In this document: positions 3,698 to 63,623 of the stretch, piece by piece
Layout: each line of letters opens with the position of its first letter
Numbering within the stretch: the stretch's first letter is position 1
Source of the DNA: Oculina patagonica
Lineage: Eukaryota
Assembly: GCF_052425735.1 (NCBI RefSeq)
Contig: NC_135761.1
Coordinates: forward strand, 20,336,001-20,400,000
Reading direction: 5' to 3'
Length of the DNA stretch: 64,000 nt
Translations under genes and position numbers: made by a program
Notes under the pieces: model-generated
The model's database searches: none
What the model saw: only the letters and a program-made list of their open reading frames with translations
Told to the model about the DNA's origin: nothing

Positions 3698-6600
3698 TTA
3701 TGCTATGCCATAGCACTTTAGCTTTCCCAGTGTGTGATAACCTTCCTCGCCACTTGATACATCCCCAAACCTGAGCTGTTTAACTGGAAGATGTGTCTTG
3801 TCAGTGAGGAGACCGCTGTCCTCACGCCATACAGCGTCATTCTTATCACAGTTACAACCATACCTGGAGTCTGCACATGAGTTGTTCATCCCGCATGCGC
3901 ACTTACCACTACCAGGTGATGCTCCGCCCCAGTACGTCATCTTACTAGAGTCACGTGACACCCACCAGGCTGATCCGACTCTGAGCATCATTGAACTATA
4001 ACACTCGTACTTGATAAACTGCTCACAGTGTAAGGATACCCTGGTGAGACTCGCCAACTGAGGCAGACTCGCTCCAGTATAATGAATGTCACGCGAATAA
4101 CAACCGTGATCTTCACATCCGTCTACGTGCGTCCTGCTTTCACTGTCGTGATTTATTACTGTCACGCCAACTCCATTCTTGTCACTCATGTCACAATAAA
4201 CTGTAAATGGTGCCAGGCCTCCCGAGCCATCTGGACCAATGACGTAATTTCCGCTTACACTGCTGGCGTGTTTTCTTATCCCAGAACACGAAGTCGCAAT
4301 AACTGGGGAATTGATTTTGACCTTGGCTTCTATTATTGACAAAGCATTAGTCGCTCTACAGGTGTAAGATCCTTCGTGTGATTTCTTGATGTTCTGAATC
4401 AGCAGTGTTTCATTCTGTAGAACATTGGACTCTACAGGAAGTAGAGACTTACCATCCTTTGTCCAAGTGATTGTAGTTCTCAGGTCACTCTCGGCCACAC
4501 ACGGCAGATGGAGACTTAAACCAATCACAGGAGTCACCTCTTGAGGAGGACGGACTTTAAAACGCAAAGGAGGGAATACCGTTAGTTGAGCAGTGTCAGT
4601 TGCCGATCCCAGAATATTCTCTGCTTTACAAATGTATGTTCCACCGTCCTTTCTTGTCACACTGTTAATAGTCAACGTTCCATTCACCACTTTATTTCTG
4701 TCTTCAGGCAAACTACCTACTGACTTAGCCCACGCGACACTGGGAGGCGGCTGACCATAACCACTGCAGGCGATGGTAACGTTTTGTTTTTCTTCAGCAA
4801 TCAGCCGATTGGATGATAATAAAAGTTTAGGAGCGACTGTTGAAAAAAAGGAATTATTTTCCTTTGGCAAAACATACTACGTTTACAATTTACTGAATAA
4901 ATTTTAACCAACACCTACTTTATTGTAAAGTTCACTCCAGAATGGCCATTTATTTTCTTCACGCCAATAAAAAGTTAATACAAAGATATGTTATTCACAA
5001 AAATTTCAGCCTCCAACGTACGCTTTAACCCTACGAAATCTTTCCCAGAACTCAACAACTGAACACCGCCATCTTGGAGCTGGTAATGTATGCTTGACGT
5101 CAAAGAGCTCAGCATGAAGTTTGGCGGGAAAATTAAAATACTCGAAACTCCTTGTTTCTTCGTCTTTTGTTTCTCAAAATTCCTGTTTTGCAGCTCCATT
5201 CTGCTCAAACAGCTCCAAGAGCTACAAAAAACAAGGAGTTCTGACTATTAAATCTTTCCGCCAAAATTCAGGCTTAGCTCTTTGACGTCACGCATACAAT
5301 ACCAGCTTCAAGATGGCGGGGTTCAGTTATCGAGTTTTAGGAAAGATTTCGTAGGGTTATAGCAAACGTTAGAGGCTGACATTTTGGTGAATAACATGTC
5401 TTTGTGTAAACTTTTTATTGGCGTGAAGAAAATAAATGGCCATTTTGGAGTGAATCGAACTTCTCCTTTAACGTTGTTTCACATGTATATTTTGTTTAAT
5501 TACGTATACCTATTTATAACCTAGTCAAATTGTAGGCTACTTTCAGCACGTTTATTTCAATTTAAATGTCATGGGATAAATGCGGCCCGATATGAAAGGA
5601 ATTGGCATATTTCGCACCAACTCATAACAAAACCTTCCAGTGACCAAAAACCCTATCTTTACAGCGGACTTTTAGTAACACTGATCTAAATTATATAACT
5701 TACACTGGACAGTTAATTTCGCCGAGGCATTCACTTGTCCCAGCAAATTTTCCACTCTGCAGCTGTAAACTCCGTCGTCTCCAGGTCTAACGTCCTTCAC
5801 AATCAGTGCGCCACTGGACTCTACCACGTGACGTCCAACCGGCAGCGATGAATTCAGCTTAGACCACGTGACTTTTGGACTTGGATTACCATCCGCTGTA
5901 CATTTCAAGATGGCTGTCTGACTTTCATTGACTGTCGTTCCAACAGGACGCTGCAGCAGAGATGGAGCCGAGATGGACTGGCCCGGTTCACCTTTGACGC
6001 CTTTCATACCCGGTGGGCCTCTAGGTCCCACGGGACCGGGGTCTCCTGGTACTCCGATATCCCCCTTTATACCCATCGGTCCTTGAGCTCCTATTGGTCC
6101 ATGTTTACCGGGAGGTCCGTTTGATCCGGGTCTCCCTGGGGGACCTGACTTCCCTCGGGTTCCCAGTTTTCCTCGTCGTCCCGTGTTACCTTTTGGTCCC
6201 GTGCGACAGAGCGTGTGATCTTTAGCACAGACTTGGTTTTGCAGCAGACCAAATTCTTGTTTGACCAGTGCTTGTACTTCAGAGGCGGTAAGGGTTGATT
6301 TCTTTTGTGGATCATCCGTCGAAGAGCGTTTCTGTCTTGAGATGGTCGCCTGTTTACCTGTAAAATTATAGTTATTTGTTTATTAACGTACACTCTTTCA
6401 ACCATTCTTTGACGTTCAGCGGTTGGTATGATGCGACGTATTTCCGCTTTGATTTGTCAATGTGACTAACTGACTTAGATCCCAGCTCTCCTCTGGGAGA
6501 ATGCGGCCTCCGGAGGGGGGGGGGGGGTCGCATAACAAAGGGACGGGGATGCTCGTCGGAAATTTTGAAATGAACCTCTAAAAGAGACCAATCTGGTGTG

Positions 6601-7923
6601 GCTCAAGCTTTTCCTGACCCCTAAAAGATACAAAAAAAACTAAGAATAGAATTTATATTTGTATATTTCTTCCTGTGCACCTCTAAACGAGACCATTATG
6701 GCTAAAAATATTGGCGTTTTGCCTGGAACACCCTAAGCGAGGTCAACATCCGAAATTTACACCCCTAAGCGTGTACACTCATATGCGAGTCTCCCCCCCC
6801 CCCCCCGGGATAGGTCCATATCATTGAAATCTTTTGAAATTGTAACTATTCGTGTTAGAAAAACCACTTTCTTTATTTTTTTATTTTTTATTGCAATTAC
6901 AAAAAAGAAAATTAATTACACAGTAAAGTTACATACATTTTAGGAATAGGAAAAAAAAAAATAATAATGAAAAAAAATAAAATAAAGTTAATTAATAAAT
7001 GTGATAATTACACTTCACTATTACAATTCTCAAGTTATTACACGCACAAAGATAGCCTTAAGGATAGTAACATTTGAAATAATAACAATACATATTTATT
7101 ATATAGGTTTAATTATCCATTTTTTATTAAAATATTCTTTTTTGTGATTTTACTTTCTATTTCATACTTAATTTTAATTTTGGCTTTAAACCCCGCAATT
7201 TTAGGAAGGGTTTGACTTCTTCTGCAGTCCCATAAGAACAATTTTCCAATAATTATGAAGTAATTTAATAGATCAAGTAAAGGGCATTTTTCCGTAAATA
7301 TTCCAAATAAAACATATTTTAGGGGGAGGTGGATTTTCTGTTTTGATAGTAGGTGCCAGTATGATGCAAAATCTGTCCAGAATTGTCTAGTGTGGGAACA
7401 GTTATAAAAGAAATGATTTGAGGTTTCTGACTCAGTTGTACAAAACGTACACAAATCATCGCTTTTGTAACCAATTTTAAGTAATGTAGTATTCGTATAA
7501 AAAAAAAAGTTTATAACTTTATATTGGAAAGCTTTAACATAAGATTCAAGTGCAGGAACAACATGTTTCTGCTTGGACAAAAGGCGCGCCAGAATAACTG
7601 ACAAATTACACAAGAACCTATGCTCTTAAAAAAATCTCAGTAACGTAACTGAACATACCTTTGGAGGCTTGCCAATGGCGTCCTGTAGCCATAACGTGCC
7701 ATCTTTCGTATTGTTGTTGTACTTTTAGCAGGAGTTTTGTTTCCATCTTATCACAGAATGTTACTGAGTGCGATATCAGTCGATGATGTTCTTGTATTCT
7801 GAGTTCCACGTGAATTAGCGAGATACAACACACAACAGACAACAGTAAGCCTGACGCGGAACACAAGCGGTGCCGTGTTTGTCTTCTGTTCGTCTGCTTC
7901 TTTTCTTTATCTTGGTGTCTCAT
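3698..7923 (-). CDS. Copy 1: type II TM-furin-collagen-3xIg-Caspr-type fibrinogen-like protein (CniFL-like), 685 aa; exons 7659-7923, 5704-6357, 3698-4836
   Basis: Exon 1 runs from the ATG through a basic tail and hydrophobic [20 protein letters not shown] to the donor AAG|GTATG. Exon 2 (654 nt, CAG acceptor, T|GTAAGT donor) encodes RQKR, 25 GXY triplets and an Ig domain. Exon 3 encodes 2 Ig domains plus [23 protein letters not shown]. Both introns are phase 1 and the joined frame is open. Confidence 0.9.
4927..5470. mobile_element. Palindromic MITE (long inverted arms) in intron 2 of copy 1
   Basis: ttcactccagaatggccatttattttcttcacgccaataaaaagtt (from 4931) mirrors aactttttattggcgtgaagaaaataaatggccattttggagtgaa (to 5454), and the arms extend about 250 bp. 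Absent from intron 2 of the other copies. Confidence 0.8.
6510..6810. mobile_element. ~300-bp MITE-like insert with poly-G/poly-C ends in intron 1 of copy 1 (paralogous insert at 54065-54372 in copy 8)
   Basis: gggggtcgcata...tatgcgagtctccccc ends. The same insert sits at the same position in copy 8 and is absent in copy 3 intron 1. Confidence 0.65.
6868..7559 (-). mobile_element. 5'-truncated non-LTR retrotransposon (L1/Tx1-like ORF2 C-terminal zinc-finger fragment with A-rich tail) in intron 1 of copy 1
   Basis: ORF 7113-7613 contains CTFC..ETSNHFFYNC..FW, typical of the zf-RVT region after LINE RT. There is an A-rich 3' end near 6870, and the flanks join up in copy 8 intron 1. Confidence 0.75.
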
Positions 7924-9358: not shown

Positions 9359-9367
9359 TAAGTAACT

Positions 9368-19814: not shown

Positions 19815-22719
19815 CTCCCATATAAACCTTTTGACAGTATTATTAAAGGGTCTCAAAGCGCAAGCGTGGTTGTGGAACGAAAAATCCGATGTCTCCATGT
19901 ACGAAAAAAAATTTCGAACAGGATTCCCTCTAATTCGTCGGTTTAAAAGAGTGAATAGAATATGTATGCACGTCCGTCGAAACAGTATGCTTGGAAGTGG
20001 ATTCGAACCCATTTTCCGTCGCACACTTAGATTCCTTGTGATTTTAGATCAAGCACGTATTCTGATCCACTTAAAGTAAAAACAGCTAGGGTCTATGTGT
20101 TCTCCTCACGTAAATAAATTTTCAGCGTGCTCATACGTCTTACCAGTGCCACACAAGAAATTAAAACGGTACAAGCCAATATAAAGGGTAAAATACATTG
20201 TGTAGCGTACAAGCGTCTTTGGTCAGTATAACAGCTTCATTAAATATACTTGGTAAAACACCAAAATGCAGGATTGTGATCGTATAAAATGTGTTCGTGG
20301 CGGCCATGTTGGAGAAGTGAAACAATAAAAGATATTTGTATAAAATGATTTTTTCCCAAAGGAAAATCAATCTATTGTTTCACTCCTCCAATATGGCCGT
20401 CATGAACGTACTCTACACACCAGTTTTTTCGAAGGTGTCACTTCACATTGCAATTATTTTTTACTTCATAGGCACTTAAACAAGGTAACTCCATCAGCTT
20501 TACAATTAAAACTATTATCGATAGATGCCCTGATAAAAAATAAAGAAATAAAATAATAAAAATAATGATAAAAATGAGACGTTTCGTAAGTGAGTCTCAT
20601 TGTAGTGAGGTTGCCATGACAGATCGTGTCCGTTGATGTATTTTGTTTAGCTCACCAATCCACCCAACCATGCGCCAAAGAGTACAAAAGCGTACTTCAC
20701 ATAACACCGTACTGCTATTAAATTAAACTGAAACTGTACAAGAAAAAGCGCCCAATATGTATTTTAGTTCTTTATTTCAAAATGCTTATTTTTTGCGATT
20801 ACATAATCTCGAAAAATGACTTTAATTTCGTGTTTTTGTAGAAAAATTATGCTAAAGGGAAGTAAGTACACGAAAAGTTTCCAACTAATTGCTGATCGAT
20901 ATAAAAAAGATAGTTTCAGAATCGGCGCTACAGATTCCAGTTTTACAAAGCAATTTTTATCCAAGCGATATTGAGCAAAACGATAACAAGACAAAACTAA
21001 AACAGGTTGGCATGTTCGTTTCCAACAAATCATGAAGTCGTACTAACGAGGTTAACGTTTATTAAGATATGTCTTTCCTCTGCTTCATGATATAACAATA
21101 ACTGAGGTACACTGTGATTGTTTACGAAGTTGTTATAAATTGCACATTTTTTTACTATGTGGCACAGAGTTTCTACCTTTTTTCGCTCTAATTATTAGGC
21201 ACAATTATTATCCTCGCTTGCTTCCATGCTTTTATGAACTATTTTTATTATTATCTTGCTTTCCTTATCATTATCTTCAGGTAATTGCAAAGTCACATTT
21301 ACATTTCAAACAAAACTGATTGTGATCATTGCAAATACTAAGTTTGGTGGTGATGTCAGTTCTTTTGAGAGTATCAAAAGGATACTCGAATTTTTATGCT
21401 ATGCCATGGCATTTAAGTTTTCCCAGGGTATGATAACCTTGCTCGCCGCTATCGCCTATATCGCCAAACCTGAGCTGTTTAACTGGAAGATGTGTCTTGT
21501 CATTGAGGAGACCGCTGTCTTCACGCCATACCTTGTCATTCTTATCACAGTTGCAACCATACCTGGAGTCTGCACATGAGTTGGTCATCCCGCATGCGCA
21601 CTTACCACTGCCAGGTGATGCTCCGCCCCAGTAATTCATCTTAGTAGAATCACGTGAGAACCACCAGGCGTGCCCATACAAGACAATCGTTGAAGCATGA
21701 CACTCGTACTTGATAAACTGTTCACAATGCGAGGAGACTCTTGTGAGACTCGCCAGCTGAGACAGACTCGATCCAGTGTAGTGTATGTCACGCCAGTAAC
21801 AACCATCAGGGTTACATCCCCGCACGTGTGTTCTGCTCTCACTGTCATGACTTATTACTGTCACGCCAACTCCATTCTTGTCACTCATGTCACAGTAAAC
21901 TGAAAATGGTGCCAGGCCTCCCGAGCCATCTGGATCAATGACGTAATTTTGGCTTTCACTGGTGGCGTATTTTCTGATCACAGAACAAGAAGTCGCAACA
22001 ACCGGGGAATTGATTTTGACTTTGATCCCTCGTGTGATTTCTTGATGTTCTGAATAAGCACCGTTCCATTCTGTAGAACTTTGGACTCTACAGGAAGTGA
22101 AGTCTTGCCATCCTTTGACCAAATTACTGTGGGTCTCAGGTCGCTCTCGGCCACACACGGTAAGCGAATTGCATGTCCAATCACAGGAGTCACCTCTTGA
22201 GGAGGACGGACTTTAAAATGCAGACGAGAAAATATTACCAGTTGAGCAGTGTCTGTTACTGATCCCAGAATATTCTCAGCTTTACAAATGTATAGTCCAC
22301 CATCCTTTCTTGTCACACTGTAGATTGTCAGCGTTCCATTCATCACTTCTGATCTGTCTTCATTTTTACCCCCCGCTCTGGACCACGTGATCCTGGGAAG
22401 CGGCTGACCAGCAGCCGTGCAGCTGATTGTAAAGTTTTGTTTTTCTTCGGCAATCAATCGATTGGATGATAATAGAAGTGTAGGAGCGACTGTCGAGGAA
22501 CAAAAAAAAGAATTTTATTCTTTGGGAAAACATATGGCGAATGTACTTTACAGAACAAGAACATTGAGAAGCTTGAGAAGCTTAAAATCGGGCGCTTTGC
22601 CTTGAAAGGCAGGGTTCAGTACAGCAGAAACCACGAAGCAGTTACTTAAGTAGCACTCAGTCCGACTGTGTTTGTGTAAGTCACAGGGCTTGCATGAGCT
22701 GTATTAGTGTGCATAATAT

Positions 22720-23036
22720 AATTTATACCATGCCATAGAAAATACAGCCAATCAGAATACAGGAAAGCCGTTGTATATCCGACGGTATTCAACCCAACCT
22801 TCCCATCGTGCGCTGCAATCTTATTCTCGATGAAATTTAGTGAGCGTATTTTCTATGGCATGGTATAAAATAGTTACACAACACTTTCTCGTGGTATACT
22901 ATGGAATATCCCACTTGTCACTTGTATTTTCTTCGTATACACACTCGCCTAAAGGCTCGTGTGTATACCGAGAAAATACAAGTGACTCGTGGGATATTCC
23001 ATAGTATACCACTCGAAAGCGTTGCATAACTAGTAT
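22720..23036. mobile_element. Double-hairpin non-autonomous repeat (cagccaatcaga-containing type)
   Basis: ttataccatgccatagaaaatac / gtattttctatggcatggtataa, plus a second long hairpin at about 22890-23012. Confidence 0.55.
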
Positions 23037-24057
23037 ATCTAGAACGTTGTCGAGATTGCATTATTACTTAATGACATGATGGTTTCAATTTATAAATGTA
23101 TTTCACACAATACAAATAAACGATTGAAGTAGACGACTAGAAAATGTAAAGTTTTAAGACTTAGCAAAGTGCAGTGTATTGGTAATACTGTAAGGTGCGG
23201 TTTCACCTGAAGGTCGTGTGCTTTTCGGTATTTTCCAGGCATTGCACTTTGATGGGACAGTACTACAACTGTTTACCGGGGAACTACTATTGTCAAGAAA
23301 ATGATCACAACTTGTTGATGAATGATTGAACATTTGTTTCATACCATTACTGTAATAGCAATTGATGAAGGCTTTTAGTCCTGAACTAAGGAGTGGGAAA
23401 TACTGAAACCCATTATCAGCCACCTTAAACGGAAATATCTTGTTGGTGTTTCAAGGAATCCAAGGAAACTTCACTCATCCCATGTATCTATGTATTGCGG
23501 TATTTTGTAATTTTTTGAGTGATTTTTGGGGATGTTTGGCAGGTGATAGTTTTTTTAAAAGAATTAGTAAAATTTAGACAACTAAGAAATATTGAAAATT
23601 TAATGTGAATTTAACATTGGAATTTGAAGTTAGAAATTGGCAGACGGACACCAAACAGTCCCGTGACATCCTGGAGTGTTTTTGCATGGGGGTCAACTGT
23701 GTGATAATGTTTCCATTTTTTTCTTCAATCCCCACTGATAAAGAACTGCTGTTGGTGTTATGTTGGTGTTATCACATGTCAAGCCTTTAACAAGGTATGA
23801 AAGAACACAAGGATTTAAATTATTCTGGTGCTCAATTTTTGCGTAACTAAAATTAATGTTACTCAAATTCCTGATGGATTCTGTCTTAAACTGTTACGAG
23901 CTTAGTATTTCCAAATTATTGCATGTCAATGTAAGGCAAGACAAGACATGCCTTGGTTCGTATGTAATTCTCTTAAAAACATATAAGATATTGACTATAA
24001 TTTTGTCTGTGCTATGGCAATTCACAGTGGGGTGGTCTTGATGTGTCTTTAACTTGT

Positions 24058-24128
24058 GGACTGGACTGGACTAGTAAAACGCGGACTAGTAAAACGCGGA
24101 CTAGTAAAACGCGGACTTGTAAAACGCC
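24058..24128 (+). repeat. 15-bp tandem array (GGACTAGTAAAACGC)x~4, inverted counterpart of 29571-29863
   Basis: ggactggactggactagtaaaacgc... is the reverse complement of the end of the 29.6-29.9 kb array. Confidence 0.85.
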
Positions 24129-24467
24129 TCTAGACACTTCCTTGGCCACAATCATCTTACGGCTCTCTTCAATACATAATGTCTCAAAAAAACAGTAACC
24201 TCAGAAAGAAGTCAGAAGCAAATAAGGTCGAAAGACCGAATTTGAACATATATATAACGGCAAATGTTCTAATGTCACGAACGTAGGAGTCGTGTAGGCC
24301 CGTCACCTTTATTTACCACTACCGTAATCGCAGGAAAGAAACAAATTAATTCGAAGTGTGTGGTTTGTGGAACTTATCGTCGAGGATAATCGAATTACAA
24401 GTGAGTCGCGTTTGTGAAGATTGTTTGCTTCGATTATTTTGTGGTAAACGTTTAAGCGTTTTTAGCA

Positions 24468-27400
24468 ATGGAGAAGTTTATTCAGATGGGAGAAAAGTTT
24501 GGACTCGAAGGAGAAAAGCTGCTGAAATTCGTAAAAGAACAAGAGGAGAAAGAGGAAAGACTTCAGAGAGAAAAAGAAGAGAAAGAGGAGAGACTTCGAA
24601 CACAACAAGAGGAGAAAGAAGAGAGACGTCGACAACAAGCCGAAGAGAGAGACGAGAAACGTCGGCAAGAAGAAGATGAAAGAGAAGCAAGGCGCCAGGA
24701 ACGCGATCTCCGAAAAATGGAAAGGGAAGCGGAACTTTTGAGACAGAGAGAAGCGATCGAAGCCGCGAAAAGACAGCATGAGTTAGATCTAGCACGTTTG
24801 GCGGGAGATGGACATTTCCCCGCACAACCGAACAATAACAAAGAGGAACGAGCCAAGACACCTAAACTACCGTCATTTGTGGACGGTAAGGATGACCTCG
24901 ATGCCTATCTCCAGCGTTTTGAACGGTTTGCGACGAATGCTAAGTGGGAGAAGAATGGTTGGGCTACAAAGCTTAGTGCTCTGTTGACAGGACGCGCCCT
25001 GGATGTTTATTCACGGTTGTCAGAGGAGGCCGCTACGGATTACGATAAAATGAAACTGGCACTGATGAAGAGGTATGATTTAACTGAGGACGGCTACTGT
25101 CGTAAATTTAGAGTATCTAAGCCTGAGATTGATGAAAGTCCTGATCAGTTTGTTGTGCGCTTGAGTACATATCTAATGCGGTGGGTCGAACTCTCTAAGA
25201 CCACTAAGAGCTTTGATGGCCTAAGAGATTTGATAGTCAAGGAGCAATTCATCAATTCATGTCCGAAGGAACTAGCCATTCACTTACGTGAAAGGGCTCC
25301 AGAGACACTGGAACAGATATCCCAGATTGCTGATCAGTACTTACAAGCTCATGGAAAGCACGTGTTTAGTAGTGGACGAAGTAGACCACCAGCCCCGCCC
25401 CAAAAGGATGATGACGCAAAGAAACCGCCCATTCAGCCTAGCCAGGTACAGTGTTACAAGTGCAATGGTCGAGGGCATAAAGCTGCCAACTGTCAAGCCG
25501 TATCAAGGTTGTGTTTCTTGTGTGGAAGGCAAGGACATGAAGCGAGAAATTGCCAAGTGTCTCTCAAAGTGAATTTGCCGAAGGCTGGAGGATCGAGTAA
25601 GCCTCGTGTACCCGCAGCACCACGTGACCAAGTGAGTGCTGGCTGTCTAGTTCAGCCACCCCAGCTAAACGCTACGCCAGAGGAAGTCAAGTCTTGTATT
25701 GAAGAGGATCAGCTCCTTTTAGCCTGTGGAAAAAGGATTCCGTTGCTTAGCAATGCGTGCGTGGAGCCGTTGACTGGAGCTAGAAGCAAGATGCCTGTTG
25801 TAAAGGGTAGAGTGGGTGAAAAGACAGTGGATGTTCTGAGAGACACTGGTTGCAGTGGTATTGTAGTAAAGAAGGAGTTAGTTTCAGAGGAGCAGTACAC
25901 TGGTGACTTCAATTGTATGCTGCTTATAGACAATACTGTGAGAAAAGTACCTATTGCAAAGATCACTGTGGACACCCCTTACCTGTCAGGAGAAGTTGAA
26001 GCACAGTGCCTCCCCAATGCGATCTATGACCTTATCGTTGGTAATGTGCCTGGTGCAAGAGCCGCAGATGACCCAGACCCCAGCTGGCAGGAAGCGTGTG
26101 CCGTGACTACTAGAGGTCAAGCTAAGAAAGCCGGAGAACATACCCCATTGAAGGTACCAAGTTCATCAGAGAGTCCCATAGTAGATAGAGAGAAGCTTAT
26201 GCAGTTGCAGCGTGAGGATGCGAGTTTGAAGAAGTACTGGGACCGCGATGACACTCGAGTGAAGGGTCAAGCTGAGATCTCATTTGAGCAAAAGAGCGGA
26301 GTCCTGTACCGAGTTTACAAGCACCCGTACGTAAATAGTGGAAAGCCAGTGAGACAAGTTCTGGTTCCAACCCCGTTGAGACGCCAAATCATGGATGTAG
26401 CTCACGGGTCAATAATGGGTGGACACATGGGCATAAAGAAGACAGCTGACAAAATTCAGGCTGCGTTCTACTGGCCTGGTATCCAAGGAGATGTCACGCG
26501 ACATTGTAAATCCTGTGATGTATGTCAGAAGACCGTACCAAAGGGATCAGTCCCCAAAGTTCCGTTGGAGAAGATGCCGATAATTGACAAGCCGTTTAAG
26601 AGAGTAGCAATCGACCTGATTGGTCCGATAGGCCCGCCAAGCGAGGAAGGTCACAGATACATACTGACGCTCGTGGATTATGCAACTCGATACCCAGAAG
26701 CTGTCCCGTTGGAGAACATTGATACAGAAACCGTTGCAGAAGCCCTAGTAGACATCTTCAGCCGCCTTGGAATACCGGAAGAGATCCTTAGCGATCTGGG
26801 AACACAGTTTGTCTCTGAATGTATGAAGGAGGTAATGCGTCTCTTGAGCATCAAGCAGCTGACGACAACTCCGTACCACCCCATGTGTAATGGTATGACC
26901 GAAAAGTTTAATGGATCACTGAAGTTAATGCTGAAAAGATTGTGCAGTGAGCAGCCAAAGCAGTGGCATCGCTACATCAACCCGCTGCTGTTTGCCTACC
27001 GTGAAGTTCCCCAGGAGTCTACAGGATTTGCACCGTTTGAGCTATTGTATGGGAGAGCTGTCAGAGGACCCATGTACATTCTGAAGGAACTGTGGACGAA
27101 AGAAGTAGAAGAACCAGAAGTAAAGAACAGTTACCAGTATGTCTTCGAGCTGCGCGAGAAGCTAGAAGATACTCTCAACCTTGCCCACAGTGAGTTGCAG
27201 AAATCCCAGCAGAAAGGGAAGCACTACTATGACCGCAAAACGAAGGTCCGCAAGCTCCAGCCAGGGGACAAGGTACTTGTATTACTGCCAACTGACCACA
27301 ACAAGTTGCTAATGCAGTGGAAAGGCCCTTTTGAAGTCAGCGCTGTTGTAGGCCTTAACGATTACAAGGTCAAAGTCAAGGGCAAAGAGAGAGTTTACCA

Positions 27401-28940
27401 TGTCAACCTCCTCAAGAAGTATTTTGAGCGAGAGGAGCCAGCAGAAGTGTCAGCGGTGGCAATTGAGGCTGAGACTGAGGAGACAGACGTTGAAGCCGAC
27501 TTCCTGGAGATTGGAGGATATGTACCGAAGGAGTCTATCCGTGACGTGACTACAGGACCCAATCTTAGAGATGACCAAAGAGATGAGTTTATGGACTTGG
27601 CACACCAGTTCTCAAGTCTATTCACCGAAGCGCCTGGTACCACGAACTTGGTTCAGCACCACGTCAAGCTTACGTCAGAGGAGCCAGTCAGATCTAAGCC
27701 GTATCCTGTTCCGTACAGCCTCAGAGAATCTCTTAAGGAGGATATTAACGATATGATTAAGATGGGCGTGGTCAGAGAATCTAATTCGCCGTATTCGTCA
27801 CCCGTTGTTGTTGTGAAGAAAAAGGATGGGACGAACAGGGTATGCGTTGATTACAGAAAGTTAAACAAGCTAACTGTATTTGATCCTGAACCAATGCCAA
27901 CTGCAGAGGAGCTTTTCCAGAAATTAAACGGTGACAAGTACTTTTCGAAGATTGACCTTAGCAAAGGATACTGGCAGATAACCATACCGGAGGAAGACAT
28001 CCCGAAGACAGCCTTTGTAACGCCCGATGGGTTGTATGAGTTCTTGAAAATGCCATTTGGGATGGTTAATTCCGCAGCAACCCTTAAACGCGCCATGAAA
28101 AGATTACTGAAGGATCTGCCAAACGTCGAATTCTACTGGGACGATATCCTAGTCCACACCCGTACGTGGGAGGAGCATCTCGAAGCCCTTCGTGAGCTAT
28201 TCAAGCGACTACTACAGTTCGGGATGACAGTCAGACCAAGCAAGTGCATTTTTGGCGTAGACAGTGTTGAGTTTCTTGGTCATCAGTTGCAGTGTGGTCT
28301 AGTAGGACTTCATGAGGATAACGTGGCTAAGATTAGAGACGCCCCAAGACCTAGCACCAAGAAGCAGATCCGTTCGTTTATGGGATTGGCCGGATACTAT
28401 CGAGATTTCATCCCAAATTTCGCTGCAGTGGTAGCTCCCCTCTCGGACCTAACACGCAAGGGCCAGCCAAACAGAGTGGAGTGGGGTGAAGCCCAGGAGA
28501 GAGCCTATCAGTCAGTCAAGGCACACCTTACAAGCACGCCAATTCTGCATCTTCCTGATCCTAGCAAGACGTACTACTTGAGAACTGACGCATCAGATAA
28601 TGGCATTGGCGCTGTTCTAATGCAAGAGCATGAAGGAAAGCTGTTTCCAGTTTGTTACGCTAGCAAGAAACTGTCCAACGCGGAGCGGAATTATTCTACT
28701 ATCGAGAAGGAGTGTTTAGCCATTATGTGGGGGATCAAGAGATTTCACCTATACTTGTATGGAGTACGTTTTGTACTGCAGACAGATCACGAGCCTCTCA
28801 AGTACATGAACAGTGCTAAGTTCGTGAACAGTCGCCTTATGCGCTGGGCGATCTTTCTTCAGAGCTATAACCTGAAGGTTGAAGCTATCAAGGGATCAGA
28901 CAATGTTGGAGCAGACTACCTGAGCCGAGTGGTTGAGTAA
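24468..28940 (+). CDS. Gmr1-like Ty3/gypsy gag-pol polyprotein (gag/SCAN-like, 2 CCHC, PR, INT, RT, RNase H), 1490 aa, intact
   Basis: Zinc knuckles CYKCNGRGHKAANC and CFLCGRQGHEARNC; protease RDTGCS; integrase H..H..CKSCDVC, IDLIG/SDLGTQF/EKFN and KGPF; then RT YWDDIL; RNase H TDAS/EKECLA/TDH/ADYLSR. Confidence 0.95.
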   Translation: MEKFIQMGEKFGLEGEKLLKFVKEQEEKEERLQREKEEKEERLRTQQEEKEERRRQQAEERDEKRRQEEDEREARRQERDLRKMEREAELLRQREAIEAAKRQHELDLARLAGDGHFPAQPNNNKEERAKTPKLPSFVDGKDDLDAYLQRFERFATNAKWEKNGWATKLSALLTGRALDVYSRLSEEAATDYDKMKLALMKRYDLTEDGYCRKFRVSKPEIDESPDQFVVRLSTYLMRWVELSKTTKSFDGLRDLIVKEQFINSCPKELAIHLRERAPETLEQISQIADQYLQAHGKHVFSSGRSRPPAPPQKDDDAKKPPIQPSQVQCYKCNGRGHKAANCQAVSRLCFLCGRQGHEARNCQVSLKVNLPKAGGSSKPRVPAAPRDQVSAGCLVQPPQLNATPEEVKSCIEEDQLLLACGKRIPLLSNACVEPLTGARSKMPVVKGRVGEKTVDVLRDTGCSGIVVKKELVSEEQYTGDFNCMLLIDNTVRKVPIAKITVDTPYLSGEVEAQCLPNAIYDLIVGNVPGARAADDPDPSWQEACAVTTRGQAKKAGEHTPLKVPSSSESPIVDREKLMQLQREDASLKKYWDRDDTRVKGQAEISFEQKSGVLYRVYKHPYVNSGKPVRQVLVPTPLRRQIMDVAHGSIMGGHMGIKKTADKIQAAFYWPGIQGDVTRHCKSCDVCQKTVPKGSVPKVPLEKMPIIDKPFKRVAIDLIGPIGPPSEEGHRYILTLVDYATRYPEAVPLENIDTETVAEALVDIFSRLGIPEEILSDLGTQFVSECMKEVMRLLSIKQLTTTPYHPMCNGMTEKFNGSLKLMLKRLCSEQPKQWHRYINPLLFAYREVPQESTGFAPFELLYGRAVRGPMYILKELWTKEVEEPEVKNSYQYVFELREKLEDTLNLAHSELQKSQQKGKHYYDRKTKVRKLQPGDKVLVLLPTDHNKLLMQWKGPFEVSAVVGLNDYKVKVKGKERVYHVNLLKKYFEREEPAEVSAVAIEAETEETDVEADFLEIGGYVPKESIRDVTTGPNLRDDQRDEFMDLAHQFSSLFTEAPGTTNLVQHHVKLTSEEPVRSKPYPVPYSLRESLKEDINDMIKMGVVRESNSPYSSPVVVVKKKDGTNRVCVDYRKLNKLTVFDPEPMPTAEELFQKLNGDKYFSKIDLSKGYWQITIPEEDIPKTAFVTPDGLYEFLKMPFGMVNSAATLKRAMKRLLKDLPNVEFYWDDILVHTRTWEEHLEALRELFKRLLQFGMTVRPSKCIFGVDSVEFLGHQLQCGLVGLHEDNVAKIRDAPRPSTKKQIRSFMGLAGYYRDFIPNFAAVVAPLSDLTRKGQPNRVEWGEAQERAYQSVKAHLTSTPILHLPDPSKTYYLRTDASDNGIGAVLMQEHEGKLFPVCYASKKLSNAERNYSTIEKECLAIMWGIKRFHLYLYGVRFVLQTDHEPLKYMNSAKFVNSRLMRWAIFLQSYNLKVEAIKGSDNVGADYLSRVVE

Positions 28941-29040
28941 GAAGGACAAATCTAAGACACTGGACTACCCCCAATTCTGTAAAGTCAATTTTTCGTTATT
29001 ATTGAGAAATGTTTGCAAATTTCTTTTCAAGAGGGGGTTA

Positions 29041-29321
29041 TGTTACAAAAAATTGTGTTACTTCCGAAACTGAGCGTGACATTGTTCGTGACATTGTCCA
29101 TGTGACGTATTTTCCCACGAGGATGTTTATTTTTAGACTTTCGCTTAGGTCACGTGATAGAGACTTTCCGGAGAAGAACTTGAGACGAGAAGTGTTTTTG
29201 GAGTTGATTGTCGAAGGGTGCGACATGTTAAGCTGGAATTAAGTAAAATTGTTGTGTTACCGAGAATCCTGCGTTCAGTCTGGTAAACGTTTACTTCACC
29301 AAACCGAATCCATTCGTAACA
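29041..29321 (+). mobile_element. 3' LTR (281 bp) of the Gmr1-like element, preceded by a polypurine tract
   Basis: PPT aagaggggg ends 3 nt before TGTTAC (29041), and the element ends GTAACA (29321), giving a 6-bp terminal inverted repeat. Confidence 0.8.
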
Positions 29322-29570
29322 AATACAAACGACTGCACTCAACAGACGTCAAGTAGTGGAAAGAAAGAAACATATGCACACAACTCATAGCATCAATCCC
29401 GTTGTTTTAGTAGGGGTTTGCAGAACGAACATGTGCTATACTGCAAAAACATCTCCACGCTAAAACAGACCATAGAGTGCTCAAAAAAGCTAGAAATATG
29501 CCGTCGAAGAAACACACAAGAGCTTCAAACACAAATTGTTTCGCTCGCTAAACCGTTTAGTTTTATCCGA

Positions 29571-29863
29571 TTTACAAGCGCTTGTTTTACAAGTCCGCGT
29601 TCTACAAGTCCGTGCTTAACAAGCCCTCGTTTTACAAGTCCGCGTTTTACAAGTCCGCGTTTTACTAGTCCGCGTTTTACAAGTCCGCGTTTTACTAGTC
29701 CGCGTTTTACTAGTCCGCCTTTTACAAGTCCGCGTTTTACCTGAGTCCGCGTTTTACTAGTCCGCGTTTTACAAGTCCGCGTTTTACTAGTCCGCGTTAT
29801 ACTAGTCCGCGTTTTACAAGTCCGCGTTTTACTAGTCCGCGTTTTACTAGTCCAGTCCAGTCC
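29571..29863 (-). repeat. 15-bp tandem array (GCGTTTTACWAGTCC)x~19 ending in ccagtccagtcc
   Basis: Directly visible. It generates the spurious FTSPR/VKRGL/SKTRT ORFs. Confidence 0.9.
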
Positions 29864-31441: not shown

Positions 31442-32492
31442 CAGTATGGGGCCCTGTTCTCGGCCGGGCCAGTTCTCGGCCACTTTGTGTTTAACGCGTT
31501 TTTTCACACTCCAGTTGAATTAAAAGAAAAAGGTATTTCCTTCAAACGATAGACTGATTCGTGTGCTTTAAGTATCTTGAGTTTGATCGTTCAATTCGAT
31601 ATAGAAAGCTCACACGCCGAGTTTACGCGGAGGTAGGTGAATTTGCATTCCCGAAAAATTTGTTTGTTTACGGCTCCTTAAAATTCATGGTGTAGTTAAA
31701 TTCGTATTTTATCCAAAAGCCCCCACCATACGAGCTAATATTTGGCATGTCAAACGTAGAATAATTCAGCTTTCTGCTTTAGTTAACTTTTCGTTGAACC
31801 GTTGTATTTTTTGGTCTTAATTTACTTCGAAATTTTTTCTTGCGACGTTTGCGTATTTGCCAGTTCTCGGCCACCCTGCTCGCTATCACAGCTTAGCGCT
31901 TGGTTTTTAATATAATTTCATCTGCTGCTGCCAGAATGAAAGAAATAAATGTTTTAAAAATAAAGTTCAATCTTATCTCTAAGTTTTGAGCTGACTCTTG
32001 TCTTGTCTATTATTTCTACAACACCTAAATCTTTCAAGACCTTTTCACTGCAAAATAAACCATCTAAATGCACGGGTCACACAATGCGGTTTTGCCAGAA
32101 CCTGCACATAGGCATCTAGGCGCGTTAAAATCCTTCTTTTCTAAAGTAAAACAGAGCCTCATAAAAATAATTTGGGATCGATATAACATAAATAGGTTTA
32201 CAGAGTGCTTTTATGACTGTGAAAATTAATTGAGCATTTTTTTTACAGATAATCACGCACAAGCTTTTTAGTGGCCGAGAACTGGGCCAAGGTGGCCGAG
32301 AACTGGGCCCACAAATGGAGCTTTTATTTTTATTATTGCTCGGGCAAATTAATTTTTGACCGGTCGATAGCTTTACACCAAAAAGCTGAATAATGTAGCT
32401 AGCTCTGGGAGAAATTTCAAGTTCCTGCGGTTCTTCTGAGGTAAGAAATACAAGTTTACGTCAAAAGTGGCCGAGAACTGGGCCCCGTACTG
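31442..32492. mobile_element. Tc1/mariner-pogo-type non-autonomous element, TA TSD
   Basis: TA|cagtatggggccc..ccagttctcggccact ... agtggccgagaactgggccccgtactg|TA, with internal copies of the ccagttctcggcc motif. Confidence 0.8.
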
Positions 32493-51234: not shown

Positions 51235-54200
51235 TTATGCTACGCCATAGCACTTAAGTTTTCCAACGGTATGATAACCTTGCTCGTGACCGTATATATC
51301 TCCAAACCTAAGCTGTTTAACTGGAAGATGTGTCTTGTCAGTGAGCAGACCGCTGTCTTCGCGCCATTCACCGTCATTCTTATCACAGTTACAACCATAA
51401 CTGGAGTCTGCACATGAGTTGGTCATCCCGCATGCGCACTTACCACTGCCAGGCGATGCTCCGCCCCAGTACGTCATCTTAGTAGTGTCACGTGACACCC
51501 ACCAGGCCTGTCCCCATCGAAACATCACTGAATTATAACACTCGTACTTAATAAACTGTTCACAGTGTAAGGAGACCCTGGTAAGACTTGCCAGCTGAGA
51601 CAGGCTTGCTCCTGTATAGTGAATGTCACGTGAATAACAACCCGCGGAGTCACATCCGTTCACGTGCGTTCTGGTCTCACTGTCATGACTTATTACTGTC
51701 ACGCCGACTCCATTCTTGTCACTCATGTCACAATAAACTGTAAATGGTGCCAGGCCTCCTGCGCCATCCGGATCAATGACGTAATTTCCGCTTACACTGG
51801 TGACGAATTTTCTGATCACAGAACAAGAAGTCGCAATAACTGGAGAATTGATTTTTACTTTAGCTTCTATTGTTGACAGAGCATTAGTTGCTTTACAGGT
51901 GTAATATCCTTCGTGTGATTTCTTGATGTTCTGAATCAGCAGTGTTTGATTTTGTAGAACATTGGACTCTACAGGAAGTGAAGACTTGCCATCCTTTGTC
52001 CAAGTGATTGTAGTTCTCAGGTCACTCTCGGCAACACAGGGCAGGTGGAGGTTTGAACTAATCACAGGAGTCACCTCTTGAGGAGGACGGACTTTAAAAC
52101 GCAGAGGAGGAAATACCATCAGTTGAGCAGTGTCAGTTGCTGATCCCAGAATATTCGTAGCTTTACAAACGTATATTCCACCGTCTACTCTTGTCACACT
52201 GTAGATTGTCAGCGCTCCATTCACCACTTTATTTCTGTCTTCAGGCAAACTACCTACTGCCTTTGACCACGTGATACTGGGAAGCGGCTGACCAGTAACA
52301 CTGCAGGCAATGCGGATGTTTTGTTTCTCCTCAGCAATCAATCGGTTGGATGACAATGATAGTTTAGGAGCGACTATCGAAAAACAAGATAAATATATAT
52401 CTTCAGGGGTCAAACAATGGCGAATGCAATTTTTAAATGAAATTTTATCGAATTGTTCCTTTATTATCAATAACAATTTTATATAGATCTTTTCAGTTGA
52501 TTTCAGTTTTCTTTGGCCACTCGCTTTGCGAAGTTTGTTGGGAATTTGGAAACTTCGTTACGAAGTTGCCAATTACATTGCGAGTTCGCGAATCAAGTTG
52601 CGAACTTCGATACAAAGTTCCCAACTTCGGCCCGACTGAACTTCCCAAGTTTGGTAGTTGAAGAAGAACTAGACATGTTGTAAGTTTTTTATTGACGTCG
52701 GTATATTTGTTCAAACAAGTATTTTTCAACTTGAGCTGCAAGAGTGTCGCTGGGATATTCCCACCACAACCTTGCTTCCTTTAAAATTATTGAGTTCAGA
52801 TCGCCATGACTTCCGAGCAGCATGTCTTGTTTCTCCTCAACTAGGAAACTTGCGAAGGTTATTCGGGTCGAGGTTGGGAACTTTGTATCGAAGTTCGCAA
52901 TTTGATTCGCAAACTCGAAACGTAATTGCCAACGAACTTCGCAAAGCGGGCGGCCAAAGTAAACGGAAATCAACTGTAATGCTGGTTAAATTGTAGCCTG
53001 ACATGTGCAGGCTCGTTCCGATTTAAATTTCATGGGATGAAGCAACCCCTGATAAGAAAAGTTTCTCTATTAAATAGTCTAAATACGACTTCATAGTTTG
53101 GATACAATAAGTGCTTCTGCAGTTGCGTTTTCTTTTCATATTTTGCATCGGCTAAAACAAGGACCTTTACACCAAAAAGACCTATGTTTACAAACGGCTT
53201 CTTTTCAAGCATCAACCGCAACTACTCGCCACTAAATATCTAAGTTATATGGAAACTTACACTGGACAGTTAATTTCGCCGAGGCGTTCACTTGTCCCAG
53301 CAAATTTTCAGCTTTGCAGCTGTAATCTCCTTCGTCTCCAGGTCTAACGTCCTTCACAATCAGAGCACCACTGGACTCTACCACGTGACGACCTACAGGC
53401 AGCCGTAAATTGTCCCTTGACCACGTAACTTTCGGCGTTGGATTTCCATCCGTTGTACATTTTAAGATGGCTGTCTGACTTTCGTTGACTGTCATTCCAA
53501 CAGGACGCTGTAGCAGAGATGGAGCCGAGATGGACTGGCCTGGCTCGCCCTTGTTACCTTTCATACCTGGCGGGCCTCTAGGTCCCACGGGACCGGGATC
53601 GCCAGGCACTCCGACATCCCCCTTTATGCCCATCGGTCCTAGAGATCCTATTGGTCCATGTTTACCAGGAGGTCCGTCTGACCCGGGTCTTCCTGGGGGA
53701 CCTGGTCTCCCTCGGGTTCCTGGTTTTCCTCGTCGTCCCGTGTTACCTTTTGGTCCTGTGCGGCAGAGCGTGTGATCTTTAGCACAGAGTTGGTTTTGCA
53801 GCAGACCAAGTTCTTGTTTGATCAGTACTTGTACTTCAGAAGCGGTTAGGGTTGATTTCTGTTGTGAATCATCGGGCGAAGAGCGTTTCTGTCTTGAGAT
53901 GGTCTCCTGTTCACCTGCAAAATTATAGTTAGTTTATATTATTATCGTACACTCTTTCAACCCTTCTTTGACGTTGAGCAGTTGGTATGATGCGACGTAT
54001 TTCCGCTTTGATTTGTCAATGTGACTAACTGACTTCGATCCTAGCTCTCCTCTGGGAGAATAGGGGCCCCCTGGGGGACTCGCATATCAAAGGGACGGGG
54101 ATGCTCGTCGGAAATTTTGAAAAAAACCCTAAAAGAGACCAATCTGGGTGTGGCTAAAGCTATTCTTGACCCCTAAAAGATACCAAAAAACTAAGAATAG

Positions 54201-55519
54201 AATACATATTTGTATAGTTCTTCCTGTTTAGCCCTAAACGAGACCATTATGGCTAAAAATATTGGCGTTTTGCCTGGAACACCCTATGCGAGACTAAAAT
54301 CCGAAATTTACACCCCTAAGCGAGACGACGAGCATCCCTGTCACTTTCATATGCGAGTCCCCCCCCCCCCGGATAGGGTCACATCATCGTACTCTTTTAA
54401 GGTGGCTAAATACAGTTTTGAGGGGGTAAGTGAGCCCAACTTTTAACTCTCTTTAAAAATATTCAGGAATGTTCTTTCTTTCTCTTATTACTGTTTCTTA
54501 AAGCGTATAGCCATCATATGCGACATTTGACCAATAAAAATGCTAATAAACAATCAATAAAGAGCCAAAATGAATGGCCGAGTGCTTAGGAGGGGACTGG
54601 GCACTAGTTGTTTTAACAGCGTTTTTCTCAAAATCTACCCGTATGATCCCACCTCAAAATTTCAGAAATTACAAATTGGCTTTGATTTAACATTCATGCA
54701 GGATAAAATAAAAATCTGTAAGACAGATTTTTCGCAAAATAGAAAAATGTGATATTTTTGCCCCTTTAAAAAATAGCTCAAATTCTGTCTTACAGAATTT
54801 TTTTTTATTTTGCATGAATGTTTAATCAAAGCCAATTTGTAATTTCTGAAATTTTGAGGTGGGGTCATACGGGTAGATTTTGAGAAAAACGCTGTTAAAA
54901 CAACTAGTGCCCAGTCCCCTCCTAAGCACTCGGCCATTCATTTTGACTCTTTATTGATTGTTTATTAGCATTTTTATTTGTCAAATGTCGCATATGATGG
55001 CTATACGCTTTAAGAAAAAATAATAAGAGAAAGAAAGATCATTCCTAAATATTTTTAAAGACAGTTAAAAGTTGGGCTCACTTACCCCCTCAAAACTGTA
55101 TTAAGCCACCTTAAAATTGTAACTATTCGTGTTAGGAAAACCATTCCACAAAAAGCATGTTCCTGCTTGGACAGAAGGCGCGCCAGAATAACTGACAAAT
55201 TACACAAGAACCTATGCTCTTGAAAATCTCAGTAACGTAACTAAATATACGTACCTTTGGAGGCTTGCCAATGGCGGCCTGTAGTCATAATATGCCATCT
55301 TTCGTATTGTTGTTGTACCTTTCGCAGGAGTTTTGTCTCCATCTTATCACAGAATGTTACTGAGTGTGATATCAGTCGATGATGTTCTTGTATTCTGAGT
55401 TCCACGTGAATTAGCGCGATACAACACACAACAGACAACAGCAAGCCTGATGCGCAAGACAAGCGGTGCAGTGTTTGCCTTCTGTTCATCTGCTTCTTTT
55501 CTTTATCTTGGTGTTTCAT
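51235..55519 (-). CDS. Copy 8 of the CniFL-like gene, 685 aa; exons 55255-55519, 53261-53914, 51235-52373
   Basis: Conserved splice sites and open frame. Confidence 0.9.
52494..52976. mobile_element. Mariner/pogo-type MITE in intron 2 of copy 8
   Basis: cagttgatttcagttttctttggcc..gctttgcgaagtt / aacttcgcaaagc..ggccaaagtaaacggaaatcaactg|TA. Absent in copies 3, 5 and 6. Confidence 0.8.
54401..55110. mobile_element. Kolobok-like, almost fully palindromic 710-bp MITE with TTAA TSD in intron 1 of copy 8
   Basis: TTAA|ggtggctaaatacagttttgagggggtaag...cttaccccctcaaaactgtattaagccacc|TTAA. The empty site ctcttttaaaattg is present in copy 3. Confidence 0.9.
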
Positions 55520-62478: not shown

Positions 62479-63623
62479 TTATGCTATGCCATAACACTTA
62501 AGTTTTCCCAGAGTATGGTAACCTTGCTCGCTGCTACCGCCTGTATCTCCAAACCTGAGCTGTTTAACCGGAAGATGTGTCTTGTCAGTGAGGATACCGC
62601 TGTCTTCACGCCACACACCGTCATTTGCATCACAGTTACACGGACGACTGGGGTTTGCACATGAGTTGGTCATCCGGCATGCGCACTTTCCACTGCTAGA
62701 TGATGCTCCGCCCCAGTACGTCATCTTAGTAGAGTCTCGTGACACCCACCAGGCACGCCATCCCATTTCAAAGATCACTGAATCATAACACTCGTACTTA
62801 ATAAACTGTTCACAGTGTGAGGATACTCTAGTGAGACTTACCAGCTGGGACAGACTCGCTCCAGTGTAATGAATGTCACGCGAATAACAACCATGATCTT
62901 CACATCCGTCCACGTGCATTCTGCTCTCACTGTCGTGACTTATTACTGTCACGCCGACTCCATTCTTGTCACTCATGTCACAATAAACTGTAAATGGTGC
63001 CAGGCCTCCTGCGCCATCCGGATCAATGACGTAATTTCCGCTTACACTGGTGGCGTATTTTCTGATCACAGAACAAGAAGTCGCAATAACTGGAGAATTG
63101 ATTTTTACTTTAGCTTCTATTGTTTACAGAGCATTAGTTGCTTTACAGGTGTAATATCCTTCGTGTGATTTCTTGATGTTCTGAATCAGCAATGTTTCAT
63201 TCTGTAGAACATTGGACTCTACAGGAAGTGAAGACTTGCCATCCTTTGTCCAAGTGATTGTAGTTCTCAGGGCACTCTCGGCCACGCAGGGCAGGTGGAG
63301 GTTTGAACTAATCACAGGAGTCACCTCTTGAGGAGGACGGACTTTAAAACGCAGAGGAGGAAATACCATCAGTTGAGCAGTGTCAGTTGCAGATCCTAGA
63401 ATATTCGTAGCTTTACAAACGTATATTCCACCGTCTACTCTTGTCACACTGTTGATTGTCAGCGCTCCATTCACCACTACAGTTCTGTCTTGAGGCAAAC
63501 TGCCAACTGCTCTGGACCACGTGATACTGGGAAGCGGCTGACCAGTAGCACTGCAGGTGATGCGGACATTTTGTTTCTCCTCAGCAATCAGTCGGTTGGA
63601 TGACAATGATAGTTTAGGAGCGA
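62479..63623 (-). pseudogene. Copy 9, exon 3 only (exons 1-2 lie beyond the window), with a premature stop
   Basis: TAG acceptor at 63624-63626. TCA>TAA at 63124-63126 at the end of Ig3, and the conserved [10 protein letters not shown] is changed to SSSSGKCACR. Confidence 0.8.

Follow-up and report, generated by a model that had tools for sequence, protein, structure and literature searches.

Corals have no adaptive immunity, yet they must separate symbionts, pathogens and neighboring colonies, and we know of few receptors for this discrimination. The cnidarian ficolin-like proteins (CniFLs), which are said to have been first defined in the Aiptasia genome paper of Baumgarten and colleagues in 2015, have been candidate recognition receptors since that year and have been viewed as few-copy ficolin-like lectins. 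The family is defined by the combination of Collagen, Ig and Fibrinogen Pfam domains, most members having a transmembrane domain and three Ig domains, and 1–7 CniFLs have been reported per anemone (van der Burg et al. 2016, PMC5094078). In Vibrio-infected Exaiptasia, CniFLs with transmembrane and Ig domains rise together with lectin-complement genes (PMC7654579), and aposymbiotic anemones express CniFLs more strongly. Here, we describe a tandem array of nine CniFL gene copies in a 64,000-nucleotide (nt) stretch of the genome of the scleractinian Oculina patagonica (assembly GCF_052425735.1, contig NC_135761.1, positions 20,336,001 to 20,400,000; hereafter, the window). Judged by architecture and sequence motifs, the genes are members of the already named CniFL family and fall in a subclade whose C-terminal head is of the Caspr type; the novelty lies in the details and not in the kind of family. 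We consider it reasonably probable that the array encodes cleavable, collagen-stalked trimers with variable heads that form a germline recognition repertoire.

CniFL membership and gene structure

The published CniFL alignment contains two head types (PMC5094078 supplement). Most published CniFLs carry the ficolin-like head motifs VYCDM TTDGGY ... GAWW, whereas Adi_CniFL1, Ap_CniFL1-3 and Cp_CniFL3 carry F.V[YF]C[DN]M [TS]DKGG and WWVSRD, with CNCDAND..W also present in Adi_CniFL1 (PMC5094078 supplement). Both WWVSRD and CNCD.ND..W are found in every copy of the window. We assigned the window genes to the family because their collagen/Ig/transmembrane architecture and head motifs match those of published CniFLs; the clade comparison was made by eye from motifs in the trimmed published alignment and not from a tree. 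The proteins have a cnidarian Collagen repeat, three Ig domains between the collagen and the head, an N-terminal transmembrane segment and the shared head motifs, and their match to Fibrinogen_C is subthreshold. A sequence-only reading of this DNA had equated the order of transmembrane, collagen, Ig and fibrinogen domains with that of CniFLs, in agreement with PMC5094078, but had then contrasted the Caspr-like head with the family. It was right about the head type and overstated the contrast, as a published CniFL clade carries the same motifs; the published set was gathered from Pfam annotations and already includes Caspr-type heads.

Relatives of the same architecture were found in Montipora, Acropora, Orbicella and Actinia, those of Montipora and Acropora being full-length, and in Actinia tenebrosa a protein that combines Ig domains with this head shares 60% identity over the head. 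In a limited literature search, with the founding CniFL paper outside its range, we found no statement of a Caspr/COLFI-type head for the subclade. A search linking Caspr, the fibrinogen-like domain and COLFI returned nothing joining the three, and the literature on contactin-associated protein in corals returned only neurexin-like proteins of the skeletal matrix and not the CniFL family. Within this limited search, the reclassification of the head, the four hypervariable loops, the mosaic ancestry and the size of the array are apparently undescribed so far.

The intact genes encode, in this order, a basic cytoplasmic tail, a signal-anchor transmembrane segment, an RQKR site, a neck, a collagen run, three Ig domains and the head (Table 1). 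Hydropathy, motif counts, Pfam and AlphaFold2 (AF2) recovered the elements listed in the sequence-only reading: a transmembrane segment, RQKR, 25 GXY triplets, three Ig domains and a Cys-rich C-terminal domain. The N-terminal tail of copy 8 has 20 amino acids (aa), including 7 K/R and 2 D/E, and, since the basic tail precedes the transmembrane segment and there is no signal peptide, a type II topology is predicted. RQKR is kept in all eight exon-2 copies, and an R-x-K/R-R site is present in 17 of 20 collagen-bearing relatives. In the neck, Cys132 and Cys139 are invariant alignment columns. The Pfam Collagen match (PF01391) scores 50.1 bits against a cut-off of 27.2, and the run has 25 GXY triplets throughout, with one imperfection each in copies 2 and 3. 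Within it, the sequence PGKHGP (copy 8 aa 171-176, 53652-53669) is invariant in the 22-sequence family alignment and found in 19 of 20 relatives; at the sequence level, it fits Hyp-Gly-Lys-X-Gly-Pro, which we take to be the motif of collectins and ficolins that binds the mannan-binding lectin-associated serine proteases (MASPs). Exon 2 of copy 8 encodes Ig1 (aa 217-306) and exon 3 encodes Ig2 (aa 308-395) and Ig3 (aa 398-484). The three appear as confident beta-sandwiches, with a predicted local distance difference test (pLDDT) score of 84-96, in a full-length AF2 model from a shallow alignment, in which neither the head nor the N-terminus was modeled and from which only the Ig domains and the positions of helices were taken.

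With the annotated 685-aa protein as the query, tblastn and blastn located nine exon-3 copies in the window, all on the minus strand, and blastn of the exons found exons 1 and 2 inside the window for eight of them. The introns of all copies are in phase 1 and have GT..AG ends. The nine same-strand paralogues previously proposed at 3698-63623 were thereby borne out, and so were eight copies with all three exons; the claim that these eight are complete did not hold, as copy 4 is broken. The window thus contains seven intact genes (copies 1, 2, 3, 5, 6, 7 and 8; 681-685 aa) and two pseudogenes (copies 4 and 9). The predicted splicing of copy 8 gives a 2058-nt coding sequence (CDS), the product of which is residue-for-residue identical to the annotated O. 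patagonica ACROYT_G013079 (hypothetical protein, 685 aa; annotation of GCA_052425735.1, chromosome CM126638.1). The O. patagonica family comprises at least 17 distinct clusters at 90% identity among the best 120 matches, and the locus tags of these matches fall in G012172-G012218 and G013071-G013079. The public annotation merges adjacent copies into gene models of 1377 aa and 1802 aa, and automated family counts in this assembly will be off because neighboring copies are fused. Intron 1 is 1.0-1.3 kb long in copies 1, 7 and 8 and about 0.26-0.31 kb in copies 2, 3, 5 and 6.

The array is real and expressed. Contigs from four public runs were mapped to copy 8 at an identity of at least 95%, and their joins coincide with both predicted introns, 52373>53261 in one run and 53914>55255 in three. 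The joined contigs show CT..AC ends, corresponding to GT..AG on the minus strand, and in a coral metatranscriptome the exons of copy 8 are covered and intron 2 is not. Both splice junctions of copy 8, for which confirmation by RNA sequencing had been suggested, are therefore seen in contigs from RNA runs. Separately, the summed depth of contigs in the RNA runs is very high over two stretches in intron 1 of copy 8 (54095-54380 and 54524-54952), where it climbs to about 53,000 in a coral metatranscriptome; these stretches probably belong to a transcribed repeat of high copy number and not to the gene.

A Caspr-type head with four variable loops

The head is a disulfide-rich domain of ~200 aa that could not be named by Pfam alone, as this gave only subthreshold matches: COLFI (PF01410) scored 23.9 bits against a cut-off of 26.2 (profile 30-221) and Fibrinogen_C (PF00147) 16.4 bits against 22 (profile positions 5-50). 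A single-sequence search of PDB sequences returned only marginal matches to fibrinogen beta. An alignment profile of the head gave a match to fibrinogen beta that was confined to the first 58 residues (E value 5e-7) and one to the collagen I C-propeptide that covered residues 3-109 (E value 8e-7). The AF2 model of the head, based on a 74-sequence alignment, has a mean pLDDT of 97.6, and its best 24 matches among the Swiss-Prot AlphaFold models are the fibrinogen-like modules of CNTNAP1/2/3/4/5, Neurexin-4, Axotactin, nlr-1 and an Acropora EGF/laminin-G protein. For CNTNAP1/2/4/5, Drosophila Neurexin-4 and Axotactin and Caenorhabditis elegans nlr-1, the template modeling (TM) score is 0.86-0.92, with a root-mean-square deviation (rmsd) of about 2 Å and 26-39% identity; CNTNAP1/2/4/5 and Neurexin-4 by themselves give TM scores of 0.90-0.92 and 33-39% identity, also at an rmsd of about 2 Å, over ~200 residues. 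Fibrillar collagens follow at a TM score of about 0.6.

Among solved structures, the C-propeptides of procollagens I and III stand alone with Z scores of 14.6-16.2 and 175-178 aligned residues, whereas ficolins, FIBCD1, angiopoietins, tenascin and fibrinogen reach Z scores of 4.7-5.5 and a TMq of about 0.3. As modeled, the fold is much closer to COLFI than to the fibrinogen-related domain (FReD), and the model confirmed that the head is a Caspr/CNTNAP/Neurexin-IV-type module and not of the ficolin type. The same preference for a Caspr-like over a canonical ficolin head had been read from the sequence, and it agrees with the TM score of 0.92 to CNTNAP against a Z score of about 5 to ficolin-type domains. 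Because the head is not FReD-like, the ligand chemistry of ficolins is not transferable to it. The module is a widespread metazoan domain that has no Pfam model: an exhaustive phmmer search found 2464 cluster representatives at E ≤0.001, in which it occurs singly or in tandem, with up to seven copies, in mosaic proteins. The seven-fold tandem heads are in EGF/VWD proteins of about 2600 aa, and other hosts include a frog protein with Xlink, CUB, SRCR and two heads and an ostracod C1q protein.

Variation among 125 family heads is concentrated in four patches of high entropy (head residues 59-67, 102-111 with indels, 144-149 together with 155-157, and 181-186), and the rest is near invariant. All four patches are loops between predicted strands or helices of the AF2 model. 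Across six intact copies of the window, the ratio of nonsynonymous to synonymous divergence (dN/dS) was 0.16 for the head framework, 0.35 for Ig2-3 and 1.17 for the loop codons; as the 34 loop codons were selected for amino-acid variability, the last value marks a strong contrast and is not proof of positive selection.

Duplication, mosaic ancestry and decay in the array

The copies are 81-99% identical in DNA, and their flanking intergenic DNA was co-duplicated at 89-96% identity, which argues for real paralogues rather than chance matches or a collapsed assembly. Copies 2-3-4 are collinear with copies 5-6-7, which lie 25-26 kb further on; the identity is 89-96% and extends to the intergenic DNA. 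The array grew through duplication of this three-gene unit. Two insertions are younger than the duplication: one of 10.6 kb in copy 4 and one of 295 bp at 45291-45585, the latter found only in the second copy of the unit.

The nearest relative of a copy depends on the part compared. In exon 1, the closest pairs are copies 2 and 5 (97%) and copies 4 and 7 (98%); in exon 2, they are copies 5 and 6 (97%) and copies 5 and 8 (94.5%), with copies 2 and 5 only 89% identical; and in the Ig part of exon 3, they are copies 3 and 6 (99%), 4 and 7 (97%) and 8 and 9 (95%). In the head part, the pairs 4 and 7 and 8 and 9 fall to 88-90%. The synonymous divergence (dS) between copies 8 and 9 is 0.107 in Ig2-3, 0.026 in the N-terminal part of the head and 0.352 in its C-terminal part, and that between copies 4 and 7 is 0.062, 0.084 and 0.265, respectively. 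Fisher tests of the jump gave P values of 5e-5 (copies 8 and 9) and 5e-4 (copies 4 and 7) for a breakpoint that was picked after viewing the profile. The rise in dS suggests that paralogues recombined or exchanged segments, and not just that amino acids changed faster; no donor segment for either pair was found within the window. By these sequence comparisons, the paralogues are of mosaic ancestry, both within exon 3 and between exons.

Decay is seen in two copies. Copy 4 has an in-frame stop at codon 65 (exon 1, about 34849-34851); its exon 3 lacks 43 nt and shifts frame near 22024, as seen in a frame change of the high-scoring segment pair, and some 10.6 kb have been added to its intron 2 (22552-33395). 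In copy 9, exon 2, which is frameshifted, and exon 1 lie about 0.4-1.9 kb past the end of the window. The duplicated unit, the two pseudogenes and the mosaic ancestry give substance to the birth-and-death evolution that had been suggested for the cluster.

The open reading frame (ORF) in intron 2 of copy 4 encodes, in this order, gag/SCAN/zinc knuckle, integrase, reverse transcriptase and RNase H domains. The integrase upstream of the reverse transcriptase is unusual for a gypsy-type element, and no pair of long terminal repeats of at least 80 nt was found around it in 22490-33575. Within intron 1 of copy 1, a 166-aa ORF (7113-7613, minus strand) has a Cys/His-rich stretch resembling the zinc-binding C-terminus of the reverse transcriptase of a non-LTR retrotransposon. 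The 295-bp insertion contains a weak match to Hammerhead_1 at 45524-45568 (19.6 bits, gathering score 34, E value 0.07) and adjoins a long hairpin (45626-45769) with subthreshold matches to miRNA-precursor families; at gathering thresholds, Rfam has no matches in the window. Minisatellites are present at 29584-29853 (15-nt unit, 18 copies), 58704-59106 (139-nt unit, 2.9 copies) and 59450-60048 (48-nt unit, 12.5 copies), the last with long spurious ORFs on both strands and overlapping an annotated 263-aa gene model.

Table 1. Coordinates of the array, of the parts of copy 8 and of the retroelement ORF (window positions)
Feature	Position	Strand	Basis or remark
Exon-3 copies, first five of nine	3698-4836, 10737-11872, 16386-17524, 21394-22489, 36776-37911	-	tblastn/blastn
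Exon-3 copies, remaining four	41658-42796, 46748-47880, 51235-52373, 62479-63623	-	tblastn/blastn
Copy 1, intact, 685 aa	3698..7923; exons 7923-7659 / 6357-5704 / 4836-3698	-	blastn of exons; open 2058-nt CDS
Copy 2, intact, 683 aa	10737..13332; exons 13332-13071 / 12797-12144 / 11872-10737	-	one collagen Gly-to-Ala
Copy 3, intact, 685 aa	16386..19144; exons 19144-18880 / 18569-17916 / 17524-16386	-	one collagen imperfection
Copy 4, pseudogene	21394..35043; exons 35043-34785 / 34228-33575 / 22489-21394	-	translation; comparison with duplicate copy 7
Copy 5, intact, 683 aa	36776..39480; exons 39480-39219 / 38950-38297 / 37911-36776	-	blastn of exons; open CDS
Copy 6, intact, 685 aa	41658..44364; exons 44364-44100 / 43841-43188 / 42796-41658	-	exon 3 99% identical to copy 3
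Copy 7, intact, 681 aa	46748..50264; exons 50264-50006 / 48970-48317 / 47880-46748	-	assembly annotates a 681-aa gene
Copy 8, intact reference, 685 aa	51235..55519; exons 55519-55255 / 53914-53261 / 52373-51235	-	identical to ACROYT_G013079
Copy 9, pseudogene, only exon 3 in window	62479..63623	-	premature TAA at 63124-63126
Copy 8 signal-anchor transmembrane segment, aa 21-39	55403..55459	-	Kyte-Doolittle maximum 2.2 over 19 aa
Copy 8 RQKR furin-type site, aa 96-99, about 55 aa beyond the membrane	53883..53894	-	motif
Copy 8 predicted helical neck, aa 113-139, immediately before collagen	53763..53843	-	AF2, low confidence
Copy 8 collagen run, 25 GXY, aa 142-216	53532..53756	-	Pfam Collagen; triplet count
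Copy 8 three I-set Ig domains	51841..53531	-	Pfam I-set / Ig_3; AF2
Copy 8 head, aa 485-685, Caspr/CNTNAP-type "fibrinogen-like" (COLFI-like)	51238..51840	-	AF2; fold matches
Copy 8 hypervariable loops	51640-51666, 51508-51537, 51370-51411, 51283-51300	-	entropy, 125 family heads
Retroelement ORF, 1490 aa, in copy 4 intron 2	24468..28940	+	Pfam

A proposed recognition role, its alternatives and known systems

The encoded protein is probably an innate recognition molecule, and we infer a role in pattern recognition or allorecognition. By analogy with other type II membrane collagens, the chains would trimerize through the neck and the collagen stalk, and cleavage of RQKR by a proprotein convertase would release a soluble trimer showing three heads. 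The four hypervariable loops would form the ligand-contact surface, which would make the paralogues, as we propose, a germline repertoire directed against microbes, symbionts and other non-self. Through its PGKHGP motif, the stalk may link recognition to the cnidarian lectin-complement pathway via MASP. A more far-reaching proposal, which we regard as doubtful, is that Caspr-head CniFLs are a third lectin-pathway-style class, with dozens of paralogues, loop exchange, shed trimers, MASP docking and individual-specific repertoires, serving the discrimination of symbionts and pathogens or allorecognition.

Several observations weigh against a germline recognition repertoire. Trimerization, shedding and MASP binding are deduced from motifs only, and the sides of the junction contigs are short (25-26 nt), with three of the four runs taken to be RNA by guess only. 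The loop dN/dS cannot separate diversifying selection from relaxed constraint, the whole-domain dN/dS of 0.30-0.35 indicates purifying selection, and the breakpoint of the dS jump was a post hoc choice. Finally, the ficolin acetyl-group site cannot be assumed for a head that is not a ficolin-type fibrinogen domain (Z score about 5, TM score 0.3), and we know of no ligand for the Caspr-type module.

The same head could also be read as a structural or adhesive device. The proteins would then be membrane collagens of the extracellular matrix or of junctions, the COLFI-like head would provide chain registration and selection or Caspr-like adhesion, and the variable loops would decide which paralogous chains co-assemble rather than bind a foreign ligand. 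This accords with the top match among solved structures, the trimerization domain of the procollagen C-propeptide (Z score 16), and with the nearest homologous module being found in the adhesion proteins CNTNAP, Neurexin-4 and Axotactin; contactin-associated and neurexin-like proteins recur in the coral skeletal matrix according to the literature, the Acropora skeletal B8UU78 has the module, and the co-expression of many near-identical collagen stalks would pose a chain-selection problem. However, three Ig domains lie between the head and the triple helix, the head aligns to chain residues 36-245 only and is without the N-terminal stalk of the C-propeptide, and type II membrane collagens in general nucleate from the N-terminal side. 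Tandem expansion, pseudogenes and hypervariable loops characterize recognition families more often than matrix proteins, and related CniFLs with transmembrane and Ig domains respond to infection (PMC7654579). A structural role is, in our judgment, unlikely.

Clustered Ig membrane proteins with hypervariable patches, segment exchange and pseudogenes also recall invertebrate histocompatibility loci, and to our knowledge no coral allorecognition genes have been identified, so the products might be polymorphic surface or shed molecules that bind the matching or non-matching heads of a neighboring colony and control fusion or rejection. We consider this quite improbable: the 20-aa cytoplasmic tail has no recognizable signaling motif, the protein is predicted from its furin site to leave the cell, and the family is also present in anemones, where it is tied to infection and symbiotic state and not to contact reactions. 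The last alternative is that the locus is an artifact or dead, its copies being assembly duplicates or an untranscribed pseudogene field, as the two broken copies among nine and the 99% identity of exon 3 between copies 3 and 6 might suggest. We rejected it as extremely improbable given the seven long ORFs open over three exons with canonical splice sites, the framework dN/dS of 0.16, the flanks of copies 3 and 6 that are only about 95% identical, the spliced contigs in independent runs and the orthologues of the same architecture in Montipora, Acropora, Orbicella and Actinia.

The array changes the view of the family in several respects. One CniFL subclade has a head of the Caspr/COLFI type, so that ficolin ligand chemistry is not to be assumed for the subclade as a whole, and this subclade forms large tandem arrays in a scleractinian, with variation focused in four loops and redistributed among paralogues. 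The heads, loop swaps and mutants of Lys173 and RQKR are concrete constructs with which to ask what corals recognize.

Each part of the protein has a counterpart in a known system. The head module, with its Cys pattern and motifs, is shared with Caspr/CNTNAP/Neurexin-IV, but these neuronal adhesion proteins have type I topology and combine a single internal copy of the module with discoidin, laminin-G and EGF domains, whereas no window exon gave a Pfam match to discoidin, laminin-G or EGF and the proteins start with a signal anchor. The procollagen C-propeptides (PDB 4AE2, 5K31; Z score 16, 178 aligned residues) are likewise C-terminal to a collagen helix, but they are only 20-22% identical to the window head, which lacks their N-terminal stalk. 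In fibrillar collagens, a long triple helix without interruption leads straight into COLFI, which is cleaved by BMP-1, whereas the window proteins have a 75-residue helix followed by three Ig domains and, as far as visible, no BMP-1 site.

Ficolins and collectins share the collagen stalk with P-G-K-x-G-P, the globular C-terminal head and, as we propose, oligomeric pattern recognition coupled to MASP; ficolins differ in being secreted by a signal peptide, in having no Ig domains and in their canonical FReD head. In design, the closest likeness in general knowledge is to the type II transmembrane collagens and colmedins (collagens XIII/XXIII/XXV, ectodysplasin, gliomedin), with their short cytoplasmic tail, signal anchor, juxtamembrane furin site, neck, collagen trimer and shed ectodomain, although these have no head or a TNF-like or olfactomedin one and no sequence relationship is expected. 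Molluscan FREPs also combine IgSF domains with a head of the fibrinogen superfamily and form large diversified families with gene conversion and anti-parasite recognition, but they have no collagen and no transmembrane segment, carry a canonical FReD and diversify somatically, and the window proteins are not FREPs by definition. The nearest system is CniFL itself, which is likewise hexacorallian and multi-copy and has the same N-terminal transmembrane domain, collagen, three Ig domains and C-terminal "fibrinogen" head; the differences are that the head of most published CniFLs is a canonical FReD of the ficolin type and that the window holds 9 copies in 60 kb compared with 1–7 per anemone.

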